Of a stretch of DNA of 64,000 nucleotides, positions 43,748-63,861 are shown piece by piece (positions within the stretch are counted from its first letter, which is position 1; every line of letters begins with the position of its first letter). The stretch spans positions 3,224,001 to 3,288,000 of the forward strand of contig OZ281498.1 in the NCBI GenBank assembly GCA_965637545.1, written 5' to 3'. The position numbers and the translations under genes are program-made. This stretch comes from Phallusia mammillata (lineage: Eukaryota). Below the pieces are notes generated by a model. It saw only the letters and a program-made list of their open reading frames with translations, searched no databases and was not told where the DNA came from.

Positions 43748-45830
43748 TCGATAGCTGAACGCACATTACAGCGTGTACCGTGTCCGGAGCCGCAAGCCGA
43801 GGGCGTTTTGTGCCTTGTGGTCAAGAGAGTGGCTCGTTTGACCTGAATGCCGACAAGGCAAATGATGGACTTCGTTCGAAGCCTCAAAAAAGTTCTTTTC
43901 ACATTTCTTTGCGCGTTTGTTTAAGCGCAAGTACTATCAATGCCAGCCGACCGGCCGTTTTACAGATATTGTGATTGCACTTACATTTTATATGGAATGT
44001 AGAGCTCACAAAGACTGATGGCATACGTGGTTCGGACGTGACTTCGTGCATCACAGAAGCTTTACTGACATTCCAGTTGTTCAACCGATGTAGGGTTACA
44101 TCAAAAACGTTTTTGTAGCACCTGCTAAATCTTCAGCACCCGTGGCCAGATTAACAGGGCATAAACCCAACGATAAACTTTGTTCTTGCGTTCTATTTTT
44201 GTACCTTGGATTTATTTACAGCGGATACGGTCGTACTGATGCTACGGTTGGACTGTGCCTATTTGGACCCCAGTTTTACAGCGGGCTAAAAGCAGTTTTC
44301 AATAATGTTCATTGTTCATGCACCGATTACCTGGAGCTGCACCATTTTTTTGCGAATTTGAGATATTGTGGCGATATAACTATAGTTCAATGTGACTTGT
44401 TTGTGCCGCTGCAGTTTCGTGCACTTCGCTACACTCAACGAACACCCAGAATTATATTTTTACTGATTGCCTGAACGCATGATCGATGAAAGTTTCATGC
44501 GCCTCGGTGCCTAGTCGGTGTACGTCAGGTTTTCATACATCTGACTACTTTGTAAATAACCACATTTCGACGCTTTCGTTCTTTTTGCTTTTTATTATAT
44601 TTTGTAACGTAACTTTAAAAAGCTTCTATGGTCCAAGATGTCTTAACGTGGTGAACACTGAACGTGTAATAAACCTGCAGCCAAAATACATGCACTGCTG
44701 TGAGGCCTTGAGTGAAGAGCAGCAGTTACTTTCGCGCGCTAAAGCACCGTGACGCGTCGTACGGTTGAGTGCATTTGGTAAACCGAGCCCAAATGGTCAC
44801 CCTAAGCTCCCCAGGCGGTAATAAATTTATAACTTACTTAATAGTTTTACAGTCACATAATCCGTTACTTATACAGCCTTGATTTTAAAATTGCTCTCAT
44901 GTAGAATTGTTAGCACCCTTGATTAGCGGTCGAAACAGTTGTCAACAGAAAGGAATTTGTTGGATAGTAAAAATGTTTGTCCCAGGACAACCGAATAAAT
45001 GTATAAGCTTGAGGCAGGTTGTTTTGTCACGCAATCATCGACTGGTGCATACAACGGCAAGCGCTGTTTTGTCAATAAAATTACCATGGTTTTGTCTGTG
45101 TTCATTTCGAGTGTCGAAAAACAACTGTGGGAAAAAGTCTTGTCAAAGTGGATACGGCCAATAGTAATCCGGCAATTACGAAATCTTTGAGGCTGAGGGT
45201 TATACGAAGCACGTCCAAAAGTATTATTTTAGTGAAATTACGTTTAAATTTAACGTTTGTAAGCAATCGCGTTTTGTTGTTGTTTCGTAACACAAATTAA
45301 TAATTTGAAAATAAAACAAACAAACCACACCCACTGGCATTTGCTGCTTTGTTGTCTGAAACTGCTGTGAAAGTGCTTGTGCTTTGGTATCCACTAAATA
45401 CTTTATTGATAACAAACATTAAAGTCGTTTTAAATTTGGTGGTCAGAGGTTCACTAGAGTGTAAATATCAGGAAAAACTCTCATCTGCTAAACTGTCTTG
45501 ACTACAGTATTGAGAATGTGTCTATGTTATAGTCAGAAGTTGATTTAACACCAGTTTGTGATGATATATGCTGATGTTGTTTTCTGATGAGGTTTAACAG
45601 TGTGTTTTTCAAAGACACTTGCTGTCATATGACCACAACAATATAAAGATTGCTATAATGTTTCATTTTATCTCATCTGTTGAGGCTTTTCACATACTTT
45701 CAAGGCTGTTTGTCTTATAGTCTACAGTTTAGTTAAGCTTTTGTCCCAGAAGTAATTCCAAACTTGGTGTTGGTTTGGGTTACAAAACATTAATTGACCT
45801 TCACCACTATAGTGCCTTATCAAGCTGAAA

Positions 45831-48800
45831 ATGCCAGTCAGAAAGCAGGGTGAGTAGATTACCTATGTGTTTAATAAGTTCTGTTGTTATGATTTAAAAT
45901 GATACATATCAATAGATTTCCTTAAATTTTATTTGGGGAAAAAATGACCACAGCACATTGAAAATGTTAATTATTTTATAACCCTTGAATTTTGTGATTT
46001 TAAGATGCCAAAAGGGCACTGGCTTTATTGGAGCAGTACCACAATCGACTTGACAATCCAGATGATACGCCACTGAAAGGGGCCCTTGAAAAAGTAATGG
46101 ACATTTTTAGAAGCCAATTGTTCCATGCATTGTTGGGTAAGTGTAGTACTGTAGCGTTTTGTTACAAATATAAGCAATAATATGCTTTCGCCAAATTGTA
46201 AAATATTATGATACAGATATGTTGTCATTAGCGGGCAATTTAGACTAAATTGTGTTGTTTATTGTAATTCTAGTAATTACTTTGTTTTCGACAAGACCCA
46301 GTAAACATCCGTAATGGACAGACGTTAGACCCGAGTGTTTGTTTACCCCTTGTTGTAAATTGATACATTGTCTTGATGAATGCATATTGAGCAGCAGTGT
46401 TTTAAACATTTTTGTAGATATTCAAGAATATTATGAACTAACGTTATCGGAATCAACTGAAGATATGAAATACAACCTAATGGTACCACAGGAAAAGCGT
46501 TGGAATGACATCTCTACAACAGGGAACACCTCACAAGTACCAAATCAGTACAACAACAATGCCATATCCACAAAAAAGGTCAGTGCACACTGTAGTTCCT
46601 CATGGTATTGGGGTTGTTTGGTATAATATCTCATTGGTGACAAAAAATAATAAATTTGTCTGGACAACAAAATATTTAATGATACTTGTGTTTTTTCATG
46701 CTGCATAAACTAAAAAGGATACACATTTATTGAGATGTGGACAAGTTGTTTTATTGAGTCGATCATTCATTCTGACTGTTAACACTTTAGTGGTTTTAAT
46801 CTAAACTGCAGAAGACTGCTATTTATACTTGATTCAAATTTATCAAAAAATTGAGTCATTTATCCTTGAACTCAAGATAAATATACTTTGCCTATGCAGC
46901 AGCATCGGTATCTTGCAAGGGTTTGCTTTTTTGCAGACTTTTTTTTCATCTGGAGAAGTTTCCTTTTCTCAAGGGAACATAGTTGGTTTGTAAGACTCTT
47001 CTCACCATGAAATATTAAATTTATTAAATGTGCCTTCTATTCGAGACCCAATGTTAAAACTATCTGTACTTATTTGTTTGAGCTTTCAGAACTAATATCA
47101 GAGTTTTATGTGATAAGGTAGAGGTTGGCTTGTTTGAAAATAAAATGCTAAAAATCATCATACAATATCCAAAACACATTCATAGTGAATTTGAGCATTT
47201 GTTTTCTGCTGTATTTTTTTCAGAAATAATCTAGTAGCAAAACATTGTTTTGTTTGTTTAAGAAAAACAGGAAACTCTTTACGAAATCACACATTATATT
47301 TCCACTTCACCTTTGGTGTTGGGACGTTTGCCAGTTGCCCTTTTGACTACAACTTGTATTAGTTTGGTCTCCACAATTTGCAATAGCTTCCTGTCGCTTC
47401 CCTTGCGCCTCAACCGCTACTGGCACTCCCTTCACATAACAGAGGGTTCCTGAACTCGTAACTGAAGGCAATTGCCACCAATCGCCGGGCGTTTACCTCA
47501 TGGACCCATGCCCCATGCTACTTTGTGCCAAGCCTCGTTGGCTGACTGTCTTATTGCCTTGTGTGATGCGAGCTCGTCTATTATAAATGACGATCGATCC
47601 CCGGGACAGCTCGCCAGCGACGTAATGCACCCATGGGATTCAAGAGAGTCAGTCTAAGGATCAGAATTGGTGCTTGCCGAGTACTCGCCCTGTGTGATTA
47701 AGTCAAGAAGGTGGTTACGTCATTTGCGCGTATTATCTTCAGTGCCACGTGGTTCCAATGCCACAGGAAAAGAGGTTGATTCGCCGGAAAAAGGTTTTGA
47801 GCAAAGTTGTCAGTGGACAATTGTTATTAGAAGTATTGGCAATTGCTTTCGACTTATGCAATTGCATGCGTTGTCAGGCTGTGACAGAAAAGGGCAATGA
47901 ACAGTGGTAATCTCAAAAATCTTAATAAACGCGCTGGCCGCTGAAACAAGAACGGTACCAATTGGTATTTATGTCGGATTTTAACGTTGGGATCAGAAAC
48001 CCACAACAGGCCCGTCACATTTATTGCCCTGGTAGCGTAAATGAGAATCTGATCAGCATTGATCCAAGATTTTTATTGGGATGTCGGCTTTCTCCGTGGT
48101 ACGGTTTTCCTGTCACATTAAGCATTGACAGGCCGTAACCGCCGCTACAAGGTGCAGTTTGTTTGTTCTTGGTGTAAGATCTGCATTCGCAAAATAGGCC
48201 AGACGGACTGTGACATGTGCGACTGGCAAAAATGGAGTTTTGGAAAAATTGGTAAAAGTTATACATTCCATTTGCAGTCGCCGTGTTCGACTTCAACAAA
48301 GAATACGTTAGCCAGATTTACTATTCAAAGTGGTAGGATTTGTTTAGTTTGTGCAATTTGGCGTTTCGCGTGTTGTCTCAATGTGATTGTTTAGGTTTTT
48401 TAGGATGCCGGTAGAGGTTATTTTTTAGCTGACGGTGGTTAGTGGAAAACCGTCGTCTAACACTTACAAAACCCTTCAAAAAATAGTGTGACCAGAAAAT
48501 GTCCTGTATGTGTTTCTCAAAGGTGAGTTCTTCGTTTTATTCTTGTGAAAGGAGTCTTAATCGCGTTCGTGTGTGTCACTTGGCTATGGCTTTGTGTTGT
48601 GAATTGTCGTCACCAGTCTTTCGTCCTGTCTGTTATTCTTGTCATAAAATACCAGAGCATGGTGGCGTGTTTACATAGTTGTTACTTCGCTCGTAAAATT
48701 TCTCGACGTTTTAACACTACCAAGAATTTGGGTTCCTCTGTGAGCCCTCCCTTTGTAGACCAGTGTAGGTATGTGTCATAATGACTGAAGTTAGGCGCGT

Positions 48801-51800
48801 GTATAAAATCAGGTCTATATTTGGCCCAAGGTTGCTACTCATAAATAATGTACTCCGGTTGGTGTGTTTGAAATATTCATATTGGCTTTTTTTTGCGGGT
48901 ACAGTATTGCCTTTAGCTTGTTATCCACTATATCGAACCTTGGCTGTTCATATCAGGTCGCAATCGCAATCTTTATCATGCCAATGGCCAGCGCTTATAG
49001 AATAATTTTGCTGTTTGGCAGTCACGTTTGGGCGTGTTATCGCGCCATCTGCTTCATTGTGTAGTTCTAATAAGACATACTCCCCCTGGAAAGCGAAGAA
49101 GGTCGCACATTTTTGTCAAACGTCAAACCCTATTACATTTGATACTGCATTCATTTCCATGGAACGTGTATTGGGGATAAACACATATGACTCACCTAAT
49201 GCAGCTGAAAATGTTAACACGTGGTCCACTCCGTCAGTTGTGAAGATCGAAGTTGTTGGTTGAATCGATCGCCTGTCTGTACTCTGCAATCTGTTTGTAA
49301 AACTTTTACTCAGTGTTGCATGCGGCCATCAAAGCGGAACGGTGATCGCCCTTTTTTGTGCAAGCTTACCAACTCTGTTTCACACAATTGCCGGTCTCAC
49401 GACCTGAAATATCGTATACAATTAAAATTATTTGCATAAATAATACGAACAATCTAAACTTTTTTTAAATTGCGCAAAGGTTTGTTACGAAATTCACTTC
49501 CTATTCTAATTGACATCATCCGTAAAAATATGACGTATACCAAAAATATGACGTATGCCAAATATTTTGTGATTGGAATATAGCCTATATGAAGATAAAT
49601 TTAATGTGCCTTTATGTCTTTTTTCTGGGGTTATTGTTTTGTATAAAACTTGACGCAGAAAATTATTTGCACGAGATTTTGTGTGACTAAACTTTATATT
49701 CACTTGGTGGACGCGAAAATTTACGAAAAGTGCACGTAAATGTCACGACGTTACCCCAGGTCGATTTATAGGGCAAAGAAACTGAAATCAAATTTCGATC
49801 AGTCTGGACCAAAAAGTCGTTCTTAATTAGATTATTCAACCATACGACGCGGGTGTTGCTCGTATTGTGTTCCATGCCTTGCATCAAGCATTGATCCTTT
49901 TTCCTGTTTTCACCTATCTATTAAATATAGTCTGTGCATTCAGCCAGCCAAACAATATGCAGGATGAATAAGAACAAAGTATGCTGGTAATGTAGCAAGT
50001 CGATATAAGAGAGCGCTAAGCCGTTGGGACGCAACATTCATCGCTAATCCACGTTGCATGCGCTTTTATGACGGTAGTTGTTCTATGCGACAGGGATTCC
50101 CTTCTTGGTGCCGACACCGTTCGTTGTCTCTTTGATAAAAATATTTCCCGAGGGCCACGCCAGTTACTTTTACTTGGTTGGCCAGCAATCGATGCCCGTC
50201 CTCACTGCTTCCCACGATCGATGCTTGGATTGTCGTGGAAGACTTGGCCGTCGAATATTTCGCTCACCAGATCGCGTGCACATGTAGTTTGAGCCAACTT
50301 AAGCAGGAATGCAAGCAGTGTGAAGTATTTTCTAGTCCAAGGTTGTAGGGACGTATTCAAGTTATATTGACTTCTGCTGTATTTAGGTGGATGGATAAAT
50401 GTGTTCCTGCGCGATTTAATTTGTATCTTAATCAGATTATGTACAGCTAGACTAGACCGAAGAAATAAGTTAATTTACAGTTGTATTTAACACTTTTATA
50501 TGCTCTGATAACTCATTCGTACTAGACCCTATTTCTTCTGTTTAATGTGTGCGTGCAAGCAGTCGGTTGCGTGCATTTTTGACTGTGCAAGGGTCCTTTG
50601 ATATTTTAAGCACTAGATTCTTATGGAGCGAACTTAACAGCGCGCGACCTTGTTATGGTTCATGCAGCGTCTTTCCCTCACAGTATGCTTTGTTCTTGTT
50701 CCATGAAATGTAAACGAGCCTCAATCTCGTACACGTTTGGATGCAAGGTAAAGAAAAGTTACCACCATGAGCTGTTAGATTTTACAAAAGTAACAAGAAA
50801 CTTTTGTATAGTTTAATGTAAATTGTGTTAAAAAAAGAGAAGTACAAATACAAATTTTTTTTTGTATTTTGATTGTGTTTTATATGTTTGTTGTGTTAAT
50901 TGGGACATGTATTTGTTGTACAAAATGTTGTGTAAACTCTTTGTTGCTTTCAGCAGTTCTTTTGAACAAGTGACATGCCTAGACTACAGGGCACCCAGGG
51001 TGCTGTCGTGTGTTTAATAATTTAGGCCGGTCGGTTCAATACTAATTTGCAGACTATAGATTATTGCCCGATTAGTGTTAGCATATATTAACTACACCAA
51101 ATTGTACTTTGTTGTAATGTTTGAAATCTATGCGCACAAAAAACTTCAACCTGACGATGAAAAATATAAAAATACCTAAAACTCCTATTGCAGTCAGCCC
51201 TAATTGACTAGGTTGTAGTTCAACTGTGTCTAACTATTACATGTTTTGGGAAATCTTTATTTCCAGGTTAAAATCAGTTATCAGTTGAAATAAAGATTTC
51301 CCAAAATGTGTGATATTACTATGGGAGGTGGAAATCGTTGCAACAATGGCAACAGAACAGGGAATGATTCCCAGAATCAATTTACAAGGATTTGTGTTTA
51401 ACTGTGTTTGCATTCTTTTTGTACAGAAATACCAGTACAATGGTGATGATGTGAATGAAGAAGTTGAACTGCAAAGATCACAGAGTGGAAGTAGTGGCAC
51501 AAAAATACAAGAGAGAACCCAGTTTGCGAAACAACCTCAGCCCCAGTTATCACCAGTTGGATACAACTCAAATGTAAACATTTTTTTAAATTTAGGTTTC
51601 AATTTTAGCTGCACCTACTCATCAGTAGGCCAGTTAATTTCTCATACCACCTCATGTCAATGCATCAACGTGGTATATATCATGCCATTTTTGGTGTTGT
51701 AAACAAAATATGTGATTTATTTCAGACAAATCAGTTACTTCAGCAGTACCAGCAGCCGACCCCTAATGTAAGTACACATGTGAGTGAAGGCAGTACAGTT

Positions 51801-53291
51801 ATACTTGTATTTCTGTTGCCGCGTAAAGGCCTATTGTAAAACCTCTTGTCTGTGTTAAGCAAACACATCCTGTGTATTTTTCAGACCCCACTAACGCCAA
51901 CATACGAATATGATGAGATTACTCTGGAAAGGGTAAGTTTAAAAATATTCTGACTTTTTATACGAACACTGTATTATATAAACAGAATGCTTTTGTTGTT
52001 GGTTTTGTTTTAAAAAAAGTATTTTTGTGCAGGGAACTGCTGGCCTAGGATTTTCAATAGCTGGTGGCAGAGACAATCCCCTAGAAGGTGATGACGTCAG
52101 CATTTACATCACAAAAATTATTGCTGGAGGTGCAGCAGCAGCTGATGGAAGACTCAGGTGGGAATAGTATCTTTTTTGTTGTTTTTTATAACTTGTCGAA
52201 ATGTTAAGAAAAAAAAGAGTTATAAAAACTTTTTTGTTTTTGATAACTTCTTGAAACGTTTAAGGAAAGAGTTATATAAAGATGTATTTTTTAGGGCCAA
52301 CGATGCGATTATGTCGGTGAATGGAGTAGATACCAGCAACGTTTGTCATTCGGATGCGGTGAATGCCTTGAAGCTCGCAGGACCGAACGTGGTGTAAGTG
52401 ATTGAGGGGGTTGTCTGTTGCTGAATGGCTTTGCGCATTGACAATCTCGACATTTCATCCTCAGTCTGAAGATCAGACGACAGATCATGGCTCGTCCGGG
52501 GGATCCCCACTCCGATGTCGCGTATCTCGACAACCTGATTGATATAAAGCTGTACAAGGGAACAAAAGGTGGGTTGCTTCGCTTGCTCATCAATCAATAG
52601 GAATTTTGTTATTAAGGACAATAGGGCGAAATTACCTACACTGGAAGCTTTGGTGCGGGGCTAAAACACTTTCTGCATAAAAATCATCGAACCGGTTGCA
52701 GTAGCCATAGCCCTAAATAACCATCATAGTAGGCGAAAATGTATCTATTATAAGGCTCTTGAATCGACGCGTTGATTTATTTTCCTTTTGTTGCAAACAT
52801 TGGTATTTGAAAGAACTTTGAAACAGTTGAGTGCTAGTAGATGCTTTGTGGTAGTAATGTTTGGGTCTCAAAACATCCGGTCGATTGGATCTCTAAGTTC
52901 AGTCCTTCAATACAAAAGGGTTTTTCCTTTGCGACACGCTGAGCATTTACAAAACCTCAATGTGGCCCTACATTCTCTTTAGTTTTTGAACACGTGTAGT
53001 TGGGAGCGTTGCTGGATTATTGTTTTGTTTCTATACCCAAATCGTGCTTCGTTTGCGTCAAGGAGTTACGGAAAAAGTATACAGGAAAGTTTCCAAACAA
53101 CGTGCGGTTTCCGAAGTATTTTTGCCTTATTGCCAACTACCTAAATTTTCCAAAGCAGACCATAAGGCAGTTGTGGCCAACCTATGGCGCATGCGCCAAA
53201 CGTGGCGCATTGCATGACATGATTGCCTTCTTTTGATAATCATGAAAATCAAATTAATAAACTAATAAATAAATAAAGTAAGCCAGCCCTA

Positions 53292-53332
<41 letters not shown>

Positions 53333-56300
53333 CAGAGTTATTTTTTACTTAATAGTTCTTATTTCTTATTACTATCCTTCTCATGCGAAAGTTGTTTCTT
53401 TCTCTTTCTCTCTATATACAAGAAGTAGTCATAGAAGGTGGGGTTACGAGACATTTATGGCGCATCCAACACAGTACGTTAAAAACTAGGCGAATGGTAT
53501 GTAGAAGGTTGGCCACCCCTGCCATAAGGCATCAGCAATGTTAAACCATAGCATAAAAAAATCTGGCTTTTATACTGTTTAGTTGGCGACGATGATGCAT
53601 ATTTAGTGATTAGTTTCCCTATCTATCTTCGCCAGTGGCATCACATTCATCCGAATCGGCTTATTCTGGATTTGCGAAATCTGCTTTGTGTCTTAAGAAT
53701 CAAACTCGCAGTGAGTGACAAGTCGACAAAGAACAAACAGAGTGGATGGCAAAAATCCTAAGATCAGACATACACTTTACGAAATGAATCTGGCCCAGAC
53801 GGCTTAGGGTTTTACCAGTGCTTTCCCCCCATTAAACAAGCCCAATATAGTGCTCACAATTGTTTTAGGGGTTGGCATGTAAACACTTTGGCTTTAAATG
53901 GTGTTTTCTGGCTTCATTGTTATCCAATGTGAAAGGTTTCAATTTGTTTTGGTCAAAAGCTAAAAAACGTAGGTGTTGGCTATTTATATATTGGTGTACG
54001 AATATTATTTTAGCATGCTCAGCACTTTTAAAAAACATGTTTGTCCGACAAAAGTAGTAAGTTTGACTCAGATATGTTATTGGGTAAGCAACCAGTGGGA
54101 AAACCGTGCTGCCAATTACTGTTCGTGCAATAAAAAAACACATACATAAATGTAAATTTATTAGCACACAGCGTACAAATGAATATATGAATGTGTACAC
54201 ACGGCATTCACTAAAGTTCTTCCTTGCAAGCCTTACTTAACATGTATTGACTATTCCAGGACTTGGCTTCAGCATCGCGGGTGGTGTGGGCAACCAGCAC
54301 ATGCCTGACGACAATGGGATATACGTGACGAAAATAATCGAGGGCGGAGCTGCCGAAGCCGACGGGACGCTGCAAGTCGGCGACAAAATAATGATCGTAA
54401 GTTCCCCAGTTTTTCGCTTAACTGAGAGAGCTAAAGAAATTCCTAAAATCGGTTTTAAGAATCTTGTGTAACTTGCGCATTGCTTGCTAGTTACTGTTGT
54501 CGCTATGTAGAAGTTAAAAAGATTGTTTTGCGTAATTACATTATGTTTATTTATGGCTTACCACTTTATGTTGATAACAAATTTCATTCACGACTCGATC
54601 AAATTACTGTATTGTAATTACACGTTTCCAAAACACTCAACATTTAAAGCGACAAAGGGCCAAAAGTATGTGTTGGCAATCAGTTAGCAGAAAAATGGTT
54701 TTGTTATTTCGATTATTTGAAAATCCTTCCTTTGTCTGTGTCCAAGAATTTGCAAAAATAGAAGTTAAAGTTTCCTAAGTAACTACGCTGTCCTAAAATT
54801 CCCATTTTCAAGCCAGGGTAAATGTATTTAGAAGTAACAATACAAAATAATGTTAAAAATATAGAATAATAGAATTCTTCGGTCACGAATTTTACCGAAT
54901 GCTTTTGCAACTTTAGGTCGACGGCACGTCATTGCTTGACGTCACGCATGAGATGGCAGTGAATATTCTCAAGTCGACAGACAACGTTGTCGAGATTCAA
55001 GTTGCTAGGCAACCGGCTGTCGTTTCGCTCCAGTACCTTCCACCCGACGCCTACCCGAAGGAACATTCGTTGCCTGGCAACAGCGACTTCGCGCAAAGTT
55101 TCCATGCCAACGATGACGTCACACCCGTCATTCTACCGCCACCCAACGACGAGTTTAATCACGAAAAACGTGAACCAAGTTTATTTGCACAAAACGAACT
55201 AGAAATCGGTAGGTTATGTTTTTTTATTAAATTAAAAACAGAATGAAATAATACTAAATGTTTCGCACAAGATAGTTTACAACTCATTAATAGTTTGTAG
55301 AGGTTAAACGGCTACTTTTGGTAATTTAAATATTGAGTAAAACGTTTCTAGTGGTTAACCAAGTTAAGTAGACATGAATTGCCACAACATTTTCTCGGAG
55401 AGCATATGTTGTACTTTTGGGCATCCTAAACCAGTGCATAAAGTTTTCAAAATGATGATTTCGTGACGAACTACCAAAGTTCATTTCTCTATCACGTGAT
55501 CCACTTGGGACGCAACAAGTAATTTATTAACGAACAAGTAACGTGCTCGAATCGTAGAAAGAAAAACGCATTTACATGTTAACCTTGTTCACATGCCTCT
55601 CTATCAGCCACCGAATAGAGCTCTGTAATGCCAGTATTTCATATTTTACTTGTGTGGTGAATACTAAAGCGATAGGAGTTTGATAAGAAACTGAAAAGGT
55701 TTGATATTGAAATAATTTGCAAAGATTGTGGAAGGCTGTGTTATCATAAGGTCATTCTAACAACGTACGATATGGAGAAATGTTTTTGTAGCGGATGCAA
55801 GACAGATTTCTAAGCAAGTTGCTAAGAAAGTGTCTTTATTCTTTTGGTTTTCCAAGTGATTTCTTAAAGCTTTACTTATTGACTTGGAGTTATTCAAACA
55901 AGGAGACATATGTAATAGAAAAAGTAATATAAGGTTTTTGTTACATAACTGTGGACGAAAACCACAATTGTAGATTTTTTTCGCAGCAACTTCGAACATC
56001 GCTGCCTCGCCTTCTAGCGATTTCGACCCTGGAATGTCATTACAGGGAGATGCGGATGTTCAGCAAATCAACGACATGCTGCAGTCGCCACACAACGTTA
56101 TAAGCAGGTTGGTCTCGTTACTTATGAAGAAATGCTGGAATGATACTTGCTTAAACTTTGTTGTTTGTTACACAGGCGAAATTAACGCTAGGTGTCGTAC
56201 TCAGCCATGTGTTTCGTTTTATTTTGTTTGTGTTGTTGAAATAAATTTTGGGGCCTGTTTTGGACTGTATGAGCGAACCATAAACAAAAGATACAGATAT

Positions 56301-59300
56301 TGGCCTGAACTAAAGGCTAGAAAGGATCTGAAAGATTAGGACAGTGGTTCCCAACCTTTGTCGACGAAGGCCTCCCTTATTAAGGGACCCTTAACAATTC
56401 AAAATATTTTCATTTTTCCCCAATAGACTACATAGTAGATGCTAAACCATACAGAGATCATTTAAAATTATTTTTTTTATCAACTTTACAGATTGTATTC
56501 CCAGAGCTTAAGTGTTTATTTACGAACCACACATGAAAATTAAAGTAAATTTATCCCCTCAAACTTAAAAATTCCTTTCTGGTTTGCAACCACTGGATTA
56601 GATCATCATATAATCTGTATAAAATAGATGTTTAAATTCTGTTTTGGTCTGGTTTGAAGCGATTACAAAATGTCATACCACATGTAACAGGTCAAGATTT
56701 TCCTCTTTCTTTTAAGTTTTACAACAATTGAATTAATGAACTTTCTGATTTCATCACAGGGAAGAACGAGTTGTTACGCTTCAGAAAACTGGCGGAGGAC
56801 TCGGTTTCAACATCGTTGGTGGCGATGGTGCAGAGGGAATTTTCATCTCTTACATACTGACCGGTGGCACGGCAGATTTAAGTGGCGAACTCCATCGCGG
56901 GGATCAAATTTTATCAGTAAGTAAATCAATGCAACGATATCCACTGGACGTGTGTATTTGCCCTATCTTATCTTATCTCTGCACTCTATTGCTGGTTCAT
57001 CCTGGGTTGTTGTATTTGATAAAGTAGGAAATGTTATATGTTGTCACCTGTATTAACTTCGTGCTACCGCCTAATGTAAACATTACATTACAAACCAAGC
57101 AGACTAATGTTGAACCCAAGCACTGTGGAAAATTGTACATTTTGGAGAATAACACCTAATTTCCGCTGGTAGACAAATAGTACACTCTCGCTCATTTTGC
57201 ATGTAACCATGTGAACTAGCCAGAACGTCAACACCAACACATACTTTTTGGGAATTCTATGTAGTGAATATTTTAGTGTTCCGGATAAGGTTGCCTGAAG
57301 TTTTTTCAATGCATTTTTTTCACAGGACATTTTTGCAACTTTAGTCTATGGGGTGTTTTGTCATTTACAGTTGTGAAACTACCAACAACATAGTTGGTTT
57401 AAGATGATGTGGTTGTCAGGGATCTGGTTAATATTATACCAAACAGTTCATTTTCGGGAGGCAGAAAATGTGAATAAAAATATTAAGAAAACTGTAATAT
57501 GTTTTTCCAACTAAGTTAACCCAAACATTGCACATGATTTATCATTGTTCATTTGTTACTGAATGTACATAAACGAACCTATGCTCGAAATCGTATAAGG
57601 AATGTATTTAGTAATCTGGATCATAATTTGTATGGGGTAACTTGGAAACAATGGTGAAAGGCACCAGACTAAAAGTATGGTCCGAAACCTCTTTCTAATA
57701 AAATGAATGTGAAGGCGGGTTATTTCAATTACCGCAAAGATATAATGCAGTTTTGCTGTGTAGTAAAGGCCAAGGAAAATCGCACTTTAAAAATCACCAG
57801 ACGCTTAGTTTGATTTCTAAGATTGTTGATTTTTTTCAGGTGAACGATACGGATTTAAGAAAAGCGAATCACGAAGAAGCCGCACATGCTTTGAAAAGCG
57901 CCGACAAAGTAGTCACCATCTTGGCACAGTACAAACCAGAAGGTTAGACCATTTGGATTTTTTTGCAAGCGACAGTGGCGTGTGTTGAGTTTTGGACAGG
58001 TGTGCATCTGCTATACTATTGGGTCTAATGATTTTTTACCCACAATTTATAACCGTGAATGAAATGTGTTCGTGAAAATATTTAATTCAGAGCTAAAAAA
58101 TACGTGTTTTGCTGTTAAGTTGGATAGTTTAGTGTAAAAAGAACGTTTTTCGCGCTGTTTTGTCCAAAGAAAATCCTGGTGTATTTATATACAATCTTGC
58201 GTGATTCGCTTTATTTGACCGTGAGACTGTCAGTCAACCGGCGGTGTATGAATAATAATTCTATTTCTGGAATTCGACCTCTGATTGTGGAGTGACATAT
58301 GCTTGCATGAAAATTCACCTCATGGCGCGTGCGACGCAACAGACCGGTTTTAGCACATTGTACACGTCACAAATTACCCGATGACGCCTTGAGTCTTTAA
58401 CGCTTTTCTGCAAGACTGTTAAGTGACAGCTTTGCTTCGAAGAGTCGCACGTTTTCCAAAAAATACGTGGATCGGGCATTAGCAGCAACACGAATTCTGG
58501 CAACAAGTCGGTATTAGGACTTGGCAAAATGACAATATGCGTCACTTTCTACGAAGACTGAACTTTTGCTCTGTAACTCAATCAGAATGTTTGCTAGAGT
58601 AGTTTGCTGGTTTCATCGTGTTGTTGCGTTTCAGTGTCAGCTGAAGGTTCAGGTATTTAGAAGAATAAACAAGGATAGGGTTTGCGTTTGTACATGTTAT
58701 TATGCTGATGCAAGTCATGTTTCTTGGCTTTCGTTGTTCCATAGGCCGAGTAAGCATGACAAAATCATTATACTTAGAACAATGGTTTTAGGTAGATGAT
58801 TAGCATACAGTTAGTTCAGTCGGAAAATTTTAAAGTGTAAGTCAGCTGTGCAACTTTAAATTTTGGAAATAAGAACCAAACGGAAATCGTATACAACATA
58901 AGTGCAATCATGACTACATGCTGAATGTTCTCTGTTGAAATTTTTTTTGCTCCAGTTACTTGAAATTGCACAAGAATGATGAGAATCCAGTCTCTTTAAC
59001 GGTTTTGCCTTAACGTCCAACGGGCAAGCAGTGTTTTGTATTTTTATCGTATCATGCTATATTTATGTCTGCCGTCCTGCTGATGCGGTCATGCGCTTCC
59101 GGAGCTCAGCATTACGAGAAGTATCGTTGACTCACTGTGAACTGCACAGTTCATTTGACCTGATGAAACTGCAACAACTTGCATTCATTGTTGTAACTGC
59201 AATGCATCAGTCAGTTCAGTTCAGGTGATGAAACTGCAGTCGCGTCAGTAATTATCAGTTTTACTGTTATCGCCATTGGCTCCCAAAGGTGCAAGGAAAA

Positions 59301-62300
59301 AGCGCCAAGTACGTCTGCTGGTGCGATTAGTTGCTTGTTTGCGCAATGTGCTACGTCACCGGGATTTCGCGTGCCACCTTAAAGGTGCCGAGTGGACGCC
59401 TGTCAGCGTTGTCATAAGTTAAAGGTAGCGATGGTGCGTGGGTCATTCAGTTGGCAGTGACTACACCACGGAACAGGAAAAGTTTGTTAGGTTTTAGAAA
59501 CAAATTATCACTGGGCAGTGCATGCTACCCTAGACTCTGAGTCATTTTTAACATGTGATTTCACGTTGTATGCAAACCTGTTGCAACATACGTAGTACCT
59601 CGTTTGTTTGCAGCCACGACAGACAGTTAGACCTATCACCAGTTATGTCAGTCAAAAAACGCTTTTATTGTTTCTTTTAGCAGTTAACGACAGCCTTGGT
59701 GGCGAACTAGGATTACTCGCAGGTTACTGTTTCACGCGAGTATAACAAGCTATTCGGTTAAAACCGCCACTGTGGTTACACTGCAATGGATTCCACTACA
59801 TTAGATGGTGATGTGAGTAAAGATCCAAACCGATCCAAAAATCTTGATGAGACTGACGCATCGCTAATGGAAGTGCGACCTGGCACCAATCAGTTTCTTC
59901 GCAAGCTAACTTTGCGTTTGTCAAAGCGCTCGCGTCGCAAGAAACGGAAAACAGCAACGGAAGATACCCAGCAGGGCAGCAAGGAAAATGTGACAAGCAA
60001 CGGTGTACAGGGCGAAGGTGAGGTCTTGATCAAAATTAGCATGACGTTTTTTTGTGTTTGTTGTGAAATTGATAAAATTTGTCATCGTGAACAATAAAAA
60101 TGCTGATTTAAAGATATGTTTGCATTCCCGAAGAGTTTTTACTGCAGTCGAAAATTGCCCTTGAACAAACGTAAACAGTATTTAATAAACTGAATTATTC
60201 ATGCTGGCTTTGCCCGACTCTAGAAGTAATAACGTTTCAAATTTTCATCATCCAAGGTGATTAGATCCACACAAAAAGTCTCATACGTTTTACTTTTAAA
60301 TAACTTTAAAGTCCAGTTCAAAAACAGCAATGGAATATGGATTTTCAAACCCGAAGATCATGTGAATAATTTGTCAGGGTGACCGGGTTGTAATCAGCCT
60401 TAGCAATCTTCCTAATGTCACTGCTCAAAGCCGAGCAAATTACGCGCGTTTTTGCGACGACTCTGTAATCAACATAGGGTTATTAAAACGGTCGATGCCG
60501 GGTTGCATAATGAATCGACGGTTGTCCGTTGCATATTGCGCGCTGTCGCCCAAATCGATACCCTGCTCCATTTGTCCTAAATAATTAAAAGAGCCGTTGT
60601 TCGTTGTACCAACACCCGTCTGTATAGATTGGCGCGTAAAGTGAACGTTAGACGTTTGTGCTGCTTGGCGGCGTGTGAAGTCAAATACTTTTATGTGGTG
60701 CTTATGTCAATGAGACTAGAATTTGATCAATGTTTCCACTTGGGTAAAATTAGGGTTTACGAGAGACTGTGGCCTTTATAGTTGCGGGTAAGTTTTGTGT
60801 TTTGTTAGAGTTTGTTATATTGATACTTTGTAAGTTGTAACAGTTGGATTTTCTTTGGATTGTTTCGTGCCACAAGCGGAATTTGGGGCATTGTTTGTCA
60901 TTGTTTGCTCGGAATGCTTCACGAAAATGCGGGAGTAAACTTTCATTTAGCAAACAAACTTTTTAATGATGTTAAGTACTATTAACCTGTGTGTCTTTTG
61001 ATGTACGCAGTTAGCCAAAAGTTATACACATGAGGCTTGTCTGCATAGTGAGTATCCGTTGACCTTGTTGTTTGTTCGCCGCATGACTGGTTTTGCCTTG
61101 TCTAAACTCAACATCAAATCTATGCGGCTTATCGGCGCTGCGTCTGCCGAAGCGTGACAAACGAAAATCGGTGAGAGAGCCGGCGAATGAATGGACTGAG
61201 ATCGGAATGTGAAGCGCTTTTACACCAAGCACTCCGTCGTTACGCTCGTGGCCGTGCGTTAAGCACACACACAGCTCGCATGCGCGCACACACAATTTAT
61301 GCTGTGAAGAACTGGCATGTCAGTGTGCGTTCTGTTTCTGTGAGAAGGAACGATGATCTCCCAAAGCGAAGAAAACTGAGATTTGGTCGCCGTGAGCGCC
61401 GTATGTGCGTCATGTTTATGCGGTTTTCGCAAGCCCGTTCAGGCATTGCGATTAAACTGCAGAGTGAAACATGATTGCCGTTATCATATGAACAGATGAC
61501 AGTTAGTCAGTTACAGAGCTTTATTTAAGGATCGCGTTTCCTAACTACGTCACTTTCGGAAAGTTGCGCAGTGGGCTGTAAAATACCATTAGCTGATTTT
61601 GTTTCTTGCCTCAATGTGCCAAACTGCCAGTACCCTCGTATAGTGTTCTATTTTGTTTGTATACATACCGGTTGAAACCGGAACTAAGGCACTTGAAATG
61701 AAGATACAGCGTTTCCTAGGTATATCACTTCATTCAGTCAGACTTCAAGGGAAATAGGATGTTGTTGTGAAATATGAACTGGTTCAATTGAACATTAATT
61801 GATGACCAGTTAGACTTGACAGTTTGATTGCTTTCTGTGGTTTTGGTTAGTGCTATGATGAATTGTGATTTTGTTTTTGCATTGTAGTACGTCACTGTTT
61901 GTAGGTGCAAATAAAAATGGTTTAGTTTAACAGATAAATAACTGTTTTGCCCAGCAAGGTGAGTGTGAATAAATCTGTTTCATTGCAAGTGGTAGTTTTA
62001 AAAATATGTTGTCAAACAATCCAGTAATATGCTCTAAAATTGCCGAAACAATGTGATATTGTAAAATCATCAAGTCAATAAATGATTAGCTGCAGACAGT
62101 GCACACTGTTTTGACCTATGAGGTCCATCAGTACAGCTGGTGACAAGAATGCTACATTGAATATATCAATTTGGCAAAAAAATTTAAACTGTTTCATGTT
62201 TTATTAGTAAGATTTGAGGTAGTTCTGTGGGCCATAGGTATTCTTGCGCTTTATGTTGGTAAAATAGATGTGATTTTTCTACAGAGTACAACAGGTTTGA

Positions 62301-63861
62301 AGAAAAAATTCAAGAGCTTCGGGAACAGATGATGAACCTTTCTGTCAGTAGTGGAGGCAGTCTGTTAACATCACAAAAGAAAACACTTTATGTCCGAGCC
62401 CTATTTGACTATGATGCATCAAGAGATTCAGGCCTTCCCAGCAAAGGTAGCATTCTATTCTATGTTCTTCTAATAATAAGTAATCTTTAACATGCTCCTT
62501 TCTATATTTTGCATCTAAGTTATATTTGTGCACTCCCCCTTAAGATTTGTGCTGTTTTTAGGCTTGCCATTTCGGTATGGTGACATTTTGCATGTGATCA
62601 ATGCTTCTGATGACGAATGGTGGCAAGCAAGACGTGTGGTAAGCTTTCCCATCCACTGTACTTCCTTTTTGCAACATACTAATGCTTAATGTTGAATGTT
62701 CAGGAAGTTATAGCTGTCATTTAGAATCTGTTTGTAACAGCTTTAGTTTTTTTGTAAATGTTTGTTTTTTAAGACATGCTTCCCCCTTTCAAAATACATG
62801 TTGAATATTTATCGGATTAAGGTTGTATTTTTTGGTTATTTGTAACAATCTATTGTTTCAAAGCAATATTTAAAAACATGCTCCAAAAAACATAGCTTGG
62901 TCCTATATTGCATGTGGTTTTTGTTGAGTAGGTGGCACAGAAGATGCTATAAAAATGGTTGTGTTTTGTGACTGTGGGCTGCCAATACGCAAATAGTGTG
63001 GTGTGTTGCAGGAAGGGGGGCATGATAGTGAGGAATATGGAGTTATCCCAGCAAAACAAAGAGTTGAACGAAGGGAAAGAGCAAGATTGAAACAAGTGAA
63101 ATTTTCACAAATCAGACCTTCCTATATTGACACTAAGGTTGGCACACATGACAATTAAGTATTTGTTTTCCAATATTTACTCACAAAGTTTGTACTCTTT
63201 AATCTTAGTTTGGTGGGCAACCTGTATGTTTCAAAATTTATGATTTAAAATCTGTAATTTTTCTTAGTCAAACTAGACCTATTTAGATTATTAGGTCTGC
63301 AATTTTTTCTATTAAAACAAAAAGTAATAATGTCAGAAACATACTGCTTCATAATTACCTACATTTTGTTGCAATCTAGGAATCTTTTAGTCATGTGAAA
63401 AGGAAAAAGAGTATGATGTTCAGCCGAAAATTTCCATTTTATAAAAGCAAAGAAAATTTGGACGATTCAAGTGATCCTGAAAGTGAGTCTTCAATGAGTG
63501 AGTCGAATTTTTGTAAATTTAGCACCTAAAGCCCTATTTTTCATTTTTTATACAAACTGTTATATACCAGTCTTTTTTGAATGAGGTAATACTCACATAC
63601 AGTGTGTAATCTTGACTGGTTAATACAGTTGAACGAATAATCTTGGTTGCCACTTGAGTTTTGTTGACTGAATATTTATTTCAGACCATGTTGCATCCAA
63701 CAACCAAAGTGACAGCGAAACAAGCATCAGTAAGTTACATGTTTGACTTAATGGAAAAATTAATGCATATTTTTTAGTTTTTATTTTATATACTTACACT
63801 TACGTTTTCTTTTAAGGAGAAGATGTCATCCTTTCATATGAAACTGTCGTACAGAAAGAGT
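45831..63861 (+). CDS. DLG1: Discs-large MAGUK (DLG1-4 family), L27/beta isoform; 3'-partial (GK domain lies beyond the window)
   Basis: L27 exons 45831-45849 (MPVRKQ), 46005-46136, 46418-46578 ([10 protein letters not shown]). Then 51427-51573 (KYQYNGDD), 51726-51767, 51885-51932 ([10 protein letters not shown]). PDZ1 and PDZ2: 52033-52157, 52295-52393, 52465-52568, 54260-54396, 54917-55208. Linker 55987-56107. PDZ3: 56760-56916, 57840-57942. SH3: 62285-62446, 62562-62638, 63012-63137. HOOK: 63380-63482, 63685-63729, 63817-63861. Phases are consistent. The symbol marks the family; one-to-one orthology to DLG1 is not implied. Confidence 0.95.
48499..48522 (+). CDS. Alternative DLG first coding exon, alpha-type 1 (MSCMCFSK)
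   Basis: ATG TCC TGT ATG TGT TTC TCA AAG followed by the consensus donor GTGAGT; phase 0 matches the KYQY exon at 51427; Cys3 and Cys5. Confidence 0.75.
50685..50747 (+). CDS. Alternative DLG first coding exon, alpha-type 2 ([21 protein letters not shown])
   Basis: 21 codons; donor AAG|GTAAAG in phase 0; acceptor CTTTCCCTCACAG 1 nt before the ATG; Cys3, Cys5, Cys9 and terminal FGCK. Confidence 0.8.
53168..53521. mobile_element. hAT-type MITE (354 bp) in a DLG intron
   Basis: TIRs CAGTTGTGGCCAACCT / AGGTTGGCCACCCCTG; perfect 8-bp TSD CCATAAGG (53160-53167 and 53522-53529). Confidence 0.92.
53297..53326. repeat. (TA)15 microsatellite inside the MITE
   Basis: Direct read of the TA run. Confidence 0.95.
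56342..56595. mobile_element. hAT-type MITE (254 bp) in a DLG intron
   Basis: TIRs CAGTGGTTCCCAACC / GGTTTGCAACCACTG; degenerate TSD GATTAGGA vs GATTAGAT. Confidence 0.8.
59786..60017 (+). CDS. Candidate internal first exon of a PDZ-less DLG isoform (77 aa, polybasic)
   Basis: ATG 59786 is preceded by an in-frame TAA; encodes [13 protein letters not shown]...[19 protein letters not shown]...VQGE; donor GAAG|GTGAGG in phase 1 matches the exon at 62285 (EYNRFEEKI); acceptor TTTCTTTTAG at 59680 upstream. Confidence 0.62.
61187..61400 (+). CDS. Second candidate internal first exon of a PDZ-less DLG isoform
   Basis: ORF from ATG 61187 (or 61280) ends in [10 protein letters not shown](RER). Two nearby donors, GTGAGC at 61392 and GTATGT at 61401, are both phase 1 and compatible with the exon at 62285. 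Confidence 0.4.

Follow-up and report, generated by a model that had tools for sequence, protein, structure and literature searches.

Introduction

Mouse Dlg2 is described with two palmitoylated starts, alpha1 and alpha2, a beta start that carries an L27 domain, and eta, a form that consists of SH3 and GK only. PSD-95 (DLG4) starts MDCLCIVTTKKYR, and its efficient palmitoylation needs five consecutive hydrophobic residues (CLCIV). The alpha2 exon of vertebrate PSD-93 encodes 21 residues and ends FGCK. For rat PSD-93, cysteines 10, 16, 18, 22 and 33 have been reported, numbered in a form with 13 extra residues (PMC7685708). According to published statements, Ciona DLG lacks N-terminal palmitoylation motifs and only vertebrates have them, N-terminal palmitoylation sites are said to exist only in vertebrate PSD-93 orthologues, and the PDZ ligand of the palmitoylating enzyme ZDHHC14 is said to appear first in Ciona (PMC7685708 for the last two). 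Here we describe a canonical DLG gene (discs-large, a PSD-95/SAP97-type MAGUK) in a 64,000-nucleotide stretch of a 240-Mb genome (contig OZ281498.1, positions 3,224,001 to 3,288,000, hereafter the window), where it runs on the + strand from 45.8 kb to the window end.

We consider it likely that this gene, the single DLG gene of an ascidian, is transcribed from several alternative 5' ends, of which there are at least three and probably four: L27 (beta), alpha1, alpha2 and an internal start, i1. In the arrangement that we propose, a first exon that receives a spliced leader and two more exons would encode the L27 beta N-terminus, and the 4.8-kb intron past the L27 exons would hold two alternative first coding exons, a PSD-95-alpha-like alpha1 (8 codons, Cys3/Cys5) and an alpha2 (21 codons, Cys3/5/9/20) resembling the second palmitoylated start of PSD-93. 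Joining either of them to the next exon, called KYQY after its peptide, would swap the L27 domain for a short cysteine cluster, which by analogy with PSD-95 and PSD-93 may be S-palmitoylated and attach the scaffold to membranes. The internal exon i1 is predicted to join the SH3 exon in phase 1, which would give an SH3-HOOK-GK protein without PDZ domains and with a polybasic N-terminus, the architecture of DLG2-eta.

An earlier note on this DNA had claimed that the locus carries the whole N-terminal isoform toolkit of vertebrate PSD-95, PSD-93, SAP97 and SAP102. On reading the sequence, we found every exon that it named at the coordinates and in the phase that it gave, with canonical splice signals. 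The word "whole" proved too strong: no SAP102-type N-terminus was seen at the ascidian DLG locus, and the gamma, delta, epsilon and zeta types lay outside the search.

Results

The beta start and the body of the gene

The features of the locus are as follows.

45705 or 45728 to 45849, + strand: beta first exon (E1), ATG at 45831, MPVRKQ, phase-1 donor
46005 to 46136, + strand: L27 exon (E2), Pfam L27_1 (PF09058) with E 2.8e-17, RNA junctions
46418 to 46578, + strand: third beta exon (E3), phase-0 donor, RNA junction to 51427
48499 to 48522, + strand: alpha1, putative micro first coding exon, MSCMCFSK with Cys3/Cys5, donor GTGAGT
50089 to 50747 (coding 50685-50747), + strand: alpha2, alternative first exon, 21 codons, donor GTAAAG, RNA junction
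51427 to 51573, + strand: KYQY exon, common to the starts, acceptor for beta and alpha2, RNA junctions
51726-51767 and 51885-51932, + strand: linker exons, open joined frame
52033-52157 and 52295-52393, + strand: PDZ1 exons, Pfam PDZ, kept in relatives
52465-52568, + strand: exon between PDZ1 and PDZ2, open joined frame
54260-54396 and 54917-55208, + strand: PDZ2 exons, Pfam PDZ, kept in relatives
56760-56915 and 57840-57942 (phase-1 donor), + strand: PDZ3 exons, Pfam PDZ, kept in relatives
59786 to 60017, + strand: i1, candidate internal first coding exon, 77 codons plus 1 base, donor GTGAGG, phase 1
61187 to 61391 or 61187 to 61400, + strand: i2, second internal candidate, phase 1, probably not an exon
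62285-62446, 62562-62638, 63012-63137, 63380-63482 and one near 63816, + strand: SH3 (the first two) and HOOK exons, PDB matches for the SH3 exon at 62285

When joined, the exons from E1 to 55208 translate as one open reading frame, with AG/GT at all boundaries. PDB searches matched E2 to the solved L27 domains of SAP97 and Drosophila Dlg1, and the SH3 exon to the SH3-GK structures of DLG4, DLG1 and Drosophila Dlg1; a word search with the L27 frame gave no match. The GK exons are all found in the first 2.7 kb beyond the window (motifs in L017:81-2702, recognized by eye and carrying no profile score), and the domain order is that of DLG1-4: L27_1, three PDZ, SH3, HOOK and a guanylate-kinase-like domain.

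We aligned RNA contigs from four studies, one run per study, to positions 45650-51640. The junctions 45849>46005, 46136>46418 and 46578>51427 were found in three or four runs, the first of them in four and the last in contigs of three studies, and a contig end after 51573 runs on into 51726, confirming the donor of the KYQY exon. The L27 beta N-terminus that the earlier note had read from the sequence is borne out by its Pfam match and by these RNA junctions in three studies. Loose 5' contig ends of the form ...GGGATTCTATTTGAAT(A) join at 45702 and 45726. These beta contig ends match the ascidian leader ATTCTATTTGAATAAG, the 16-base spliced leader reported for Ciona, and trans-splicing attaches it to the beta mRNA at either of two acceptors that lie 23 bases from each other (AG at 45703-45704 or 45726-45727). 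Because beta transcripts carry an ascidian spliced leader, the host is an ascidian, an invertebrate chordate, which was the condition that the earlier note had set for its inference.

In the same contigs, ...TACGGG stands before the leader and resembles a template-switch remnant of the library. Single-base differences between the RNA contigs and the assembly at 45805 (C>T), 51471 (G>A) and 51543 (C>T), each in one study, are probably polymorphisms.

To count DLG genes, we relied on matches across the 240-Mb genome. L27_1 has a single match, which is E2, the SH3 exon likewise has a single match, and other PDZ3-like matches, the exon itself aside, are at most 54% identical. Because nothing beyond these was found, the genome appears by copy count to have one DLG1-4-type gene, the single pro-orthologue that had been proposed. 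The Pfam families PDZ_assoc and MAGUK_N_PEST had no match in this genome, nor in control genomes, and are hence uninformative.

Alpha2 is an alternative first coding exon

Runs X1 and X13, each from a different study, both contain the junction 50747>51427 (GT..AG). Upstream of 50745 their alpha2 contigs are unbroken as far as 50089 (X1) and 50510 (X13). E3 is not joined to alpha2 in any RNA contig of the four runs, and an acceptor in frame is impossible at that place; alpha2 is for these reasons an alternative first coding exon. Its last codon encodes Lys and leaves the donor in phase 0, and the exon is of the alpha type, a Cys3/Cys5 first exon that joins in phase 0 to a KY-Y exon and replaces L27. 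Its cysteines (3, 5, 9 and 20) are spaced by 2, 4 and 11 residues, exactly the spacing of Cys 16, 18, 22 and 33 in rat PSD-93. Queries with the alpha2 peptide alone, or with alpha-plus-KYQY peptides, returned noise or nothing from PDB and Pfam.

We then compared the locus with DLG genes of two relatives, reached through a protein-database search with the 97-residue PDZ2 exon that returned three exon-sized fragments. One relative is represented by contig ERZ25067590 ctg29063, of which ctg29199 is a second copy or haplotype, and the other by ERZ25067576 ctg10451. At the DNA level, core coding exons are the only parts that align to the window (68-81% identity), and no intron does. By this measure the relatives are deeply diverged from the window species, and because the alignment is confined to core coding exons, conservation of the small exons is not neutral carry-over. 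When every open stretch of 43-64 kb was compared with the two relatives, without preselection, the known exons came back along with alpha2, i1 and a small exon flanking the KYQY exon; i2 and the KYQY exon itself were not recovered. Alpha1, alpha2, PDZ1 to PDZ3 and i1 follow one another in the same order in both relatives, and the positional conservation that had been suggested as a check is present for alpha1, alpha2 and i1. The KYQY linker exon evolves very fast, and the alpha2 exon and the small exon that flank it are conserved.

The alpha2 peptide reads MCSCDCKCNSHSFSCYTFGCK at L007:11308-11370 and MLCSCNCKCNTTSISCYTFGCK at L016:9247-9312, each followed by the donor GTAAGT (E 2e-7 and 3e-6). 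All four variable sites within the shared YTFGCK codons are synonymous, and the relatives' alpha2 exons retain the cysteines of the 2-4-11 pattern and have extra ones.

Two other placements of the alpha2 start were set aside. An in-frame extension from an ATG at 50655, ten codons upstream of the alpha2 ATG, is present in the window and in one relative and absent in the other; because it is missing there, the conserved start is the Met of MLCSC. The position of this upstream ATG makes it relevant that PSD-95 tolerates six residues inserted after Met, as reported in the study that established the CLCIV rule. The other placement was a spliced-leader acceptor just before the alpha2 ATG: tttccctcacag, a strong acceptor-like site, ends at 50683, two bases before the ATG, and the relatives have no AG there, which leaves this placement unsupported.

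Alpha1, a putative micro first exon

Like alpha2, alpha1 has Lys as its last codon and a phase-0 donor that fits the KYQY acceptor at 51427, and its phase and conservation suggest that it is used as a first exon. In the relatives, MHCICMPK with the donor GTAAG, of the same 8-codon size, lies at L007:8565-8588, L008:8772-8795 and L016:1909-1932. It stands upstream of alpha2 in both, with an L27 exon before it seen in the first relative only, and the sole difference between the relatives' alpha1 exons is synonymous. We searched both strands of the 240 Mb with a strict alpha1 pattern, ATG-N3-TGY-N3-TGY-N6-AAR-GTRAG, and found four occurrences genome-wide, whereas the reversed pattern used as a control has two. 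For a random match, the probability of landing on the correct strand of the 4.8-kb intron is about 3 in 100,000.

The other matches to the pattern, MSCCCALK and MSCCCAHK (both with GTAAG and about 95 kb apart) and MFCKCVPK (with GTGAG), lie at G000:C7:23172081-23172109, G000:C7:23267107-23267135 and G000:C2:24693408-24693436, and could be cysteine-rich first exons of further genes. Within the L27-to-KYQY intron, a third Met-initiated, cysteine-containing frame (48659-48739, 137 bases past alpha1, with a phase-0 GTGAGC donor) was set aside as not conserved. The same intron yields short, low-depth, single-copy RNA contigs at 47369-47533 and 49153-49424, which are probably pre-mRNA fragments, though unannotated exons may fit too. 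RNA noise in the aligned region amounts to about 2% of intron bases.

i1, a candidate internal start

Sampled words from the i1 region (59760-60017) were found in many small RNA data sets of studies P1-P4 without exception (22 of 22), and i1 words also occur in runs of undefined kind from a fifth study. Because all sampled words are in RNA data, versus the 2% of intron bases covered as noise, we conclude that i1 is transcribed, on a wider scale than alpha2. The i1 frame has a polybasic core of 19 residues and ends ...VQGE + G at the donor GTGAGG, and its translation stays open when joined to the SH3 exon (60017 to 62285).

Both relatives have i1-type polybasic frames downstream of PDZ3b, one ending ...GGSNFIRRMSKRLSRRRKKKAAVEKQANETE + G with the donor GTGAGT (L004:18871-19009) and the second ...GGSKFIRRMSKRLSRRRKKKPVAENETKNDGGDG + G with the donor GTAAGA (L018:10001-10151). 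These frames end in phase 1 on G, as do i1 of the window and the PDZ3b donor. The second relative was read to 10 kb past i1, a span that does not reach its SH3 exon. A word search with the i1 frame gave no match, and ESM Atlas look-alikes of i1 offered nothing usable. The second candidate in this intron, i2 (61187-61400), has no likeness in either relative and no Pfam match and is probably not an exon. Of the phase-1 first exons that had been placed between PDZ3 and SH3, i1, being transcribed and conserved, is retained as a candidate, and i2, which is not conserved, is dropped.

Counter-evidence and alternative explanations

A number of observations weigh against a gene with this set of starts, and we take them together with the explanations that they would favour. 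Over a transcribed length of at least 596 nt, the alpha2 leader contains 12 upstream ATGs, among them the in-frame one at 50655, and a 14-codon upstream frame from 50662 overlaps the alpha2 start; the efficiency and start site of alpha2 translation are uncertain. Such a leader, and an alpha2 contig depth below that of the beta form, would fit transcripts that are unproductive by-products of intronic transcription or cryptic splicing and make little or no protein. We regard this as very improbable, given that the alpha2 peptide is kept with synonymous change in three species and that two independent studies contain the same junction.

For alpha1, the RNA contigs of the four runs contain neither the exon (48499-48522) nor the junction 48522>51427, which is weak evidence because assembled contigs lose rare forms. 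Both relatives are known solely as metagenome-assembly contigs, and no counterpart of the KYQY exon is detectable in them, so that their alpha acceptor exon is unplaced. Alpha1, i1 or both might be conserved for some other reason, for example because they regulate expression, belong to a nested transcript or are what is left of a duplicate, leaving beta and alpha2 as the only real starts. The missing alpha1 contigs agree with such an explanation, as does i1, whose transcription, taken alone, fits an independent intronic transcript. What has been conserved in three species with unalignable introns, however, is a reading frame together with a donor whose phase suits the DLG exon downstream: alpha1 has a Lys codon and phase 0, i1 a final G and phase 1; moreover, the alpha1 difference between the relatives is synonymous, and the joined i1-SH3 frame is open. 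On balance we think this explanation unlikely. The earlier note's two phase-0 micro-exons with Cys3/Cys5 accordingly differ in standing: alpha2 has its junction in RNA, and alpha1 has sequence, phase and conservation but no RNA contig in the four runs. Among the junctions that the note offered as a check, 46578>51427 and 50747>51427 were seen, and 48522>51427 was absent from the contigs of the four runs.

The comparison with vertebrates meets counter-evidence of its own. The run of five hydrophobic residues is incomplete in alpha1 (C-M-C-F then Ser, 4 of 5), as it is in the relatives' alpha1 (C-I-C-M then Pro, 4 of 5), and in alpha2 it is interrupted by Ser at position 4. Pfam MAGUK_N_PEST gave no score on alpha-plus-KYQY peptides, and the PSD-93 comparison uses published cysteine positions, not a full vertebrate alpha2 sequence. 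Cysteine-rich first exons could have arisen in ascidians apart from the vertebrate alpha exons, in which case the design would not be older than the DLG1-4 duplications. The exons are indeed very short and cysteine-rich, the KYQY region is fast-evolving, and an animal more distant than the two relatives has no alpha-like exon between L27 and PDZ1. Its compact DLG gene (L010:1-17200, ENA ERZ25073755 ctg64781) spans L27 to GK in about 17 kb at a GC content of 46%, with the SH3 exon split in two; the missing exon says little, as the identity of this species is open. Convergence would have to account for a position between the L27 exons and the KY-Y exon, a phase and a terminal Lys that are the same as in vertebrates, for two alpha types as in Dlg2, for an alpha2 spacing identical to that of rat PSD-93, and for the resemblance of alpha1 plus the next exon to PSD-95 MDCLCIVTTKKYR. 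We judge it quite improbable, and these resemblances argue for common descent of the ascidian and vertebrate alpha exons.

Discussion

With multiple starts as the favoured reading, we hold it somewhat more probable than the contrary that four kinds of start were already present in the single DLG gene of the tunicate-vertebrate ancestor: L27, PSD-95-alpha-like, PSD-93-alpha2-like and SH3-GK-only. The origin of the PSD-95-alpha-like and PSD-93-alpha2-like starts would thereby move back to at least that ancestor, and if the ancestor did have all four kinds, lipid anchoring of the DLG scaffold was not a vertebrate invention. The core of the earlier inference, a multi-promoter design that predates the duplications that made DLG1-4, holds, with common descent of the alpha exons as its conditional step: if they share descent, the multi-start design is older than those duplications.

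Judged by their sequence, the ascidian alpha-type exons contradict the published vertebrate-only statements. Among the papers listed in a literature search, the two that carry these statements alone mention Ciona. Their authors probably relied on database proteins, in which just the L27 form appears, and intron-hidden micro-exons can mislead presence/absence arguments built on such proteins. Ascidian embryos are easily electroporated, and the ancestral roles of L27-anchored and of lipid-anchored DLG can therefore be tested directly there, where the nervous system has a few hundred cells.

Comparison with known DLG genes

The beta start shares the MPVRKQ beginning and the L27_1 domain with SAP97/DLG1 beta and Drosophila DlgS97, and differs from them in that the ascidian beta mRNA takes a trans-spliced leader at two alternative acceptors. 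Alpha1 resembles PSD-95 alpha (DLG4) in having Met-x-Cys-x-Cys followed, past the splice, by Lys-Lys-Tyr-x-Tyr (MSCMCFSK + KYQY), although the ascidian start is two residues shorter. A further likeness is to mouse and human DLG2 (PSD-93/chapsyn-110), in which alternative first exons provide two cysteine-rich starts, one with L27 and a form limited to SH3 and GK, the last of these being predicted in the ascidian. In contrast to DLG2-eta, whose exons are non-coding in mouse, the ascidian i1 is a 77-residue polybasic coding exon of its own, and the ascidian forms all share a single gene that is unduplicated and, at about 21 kb, compact.

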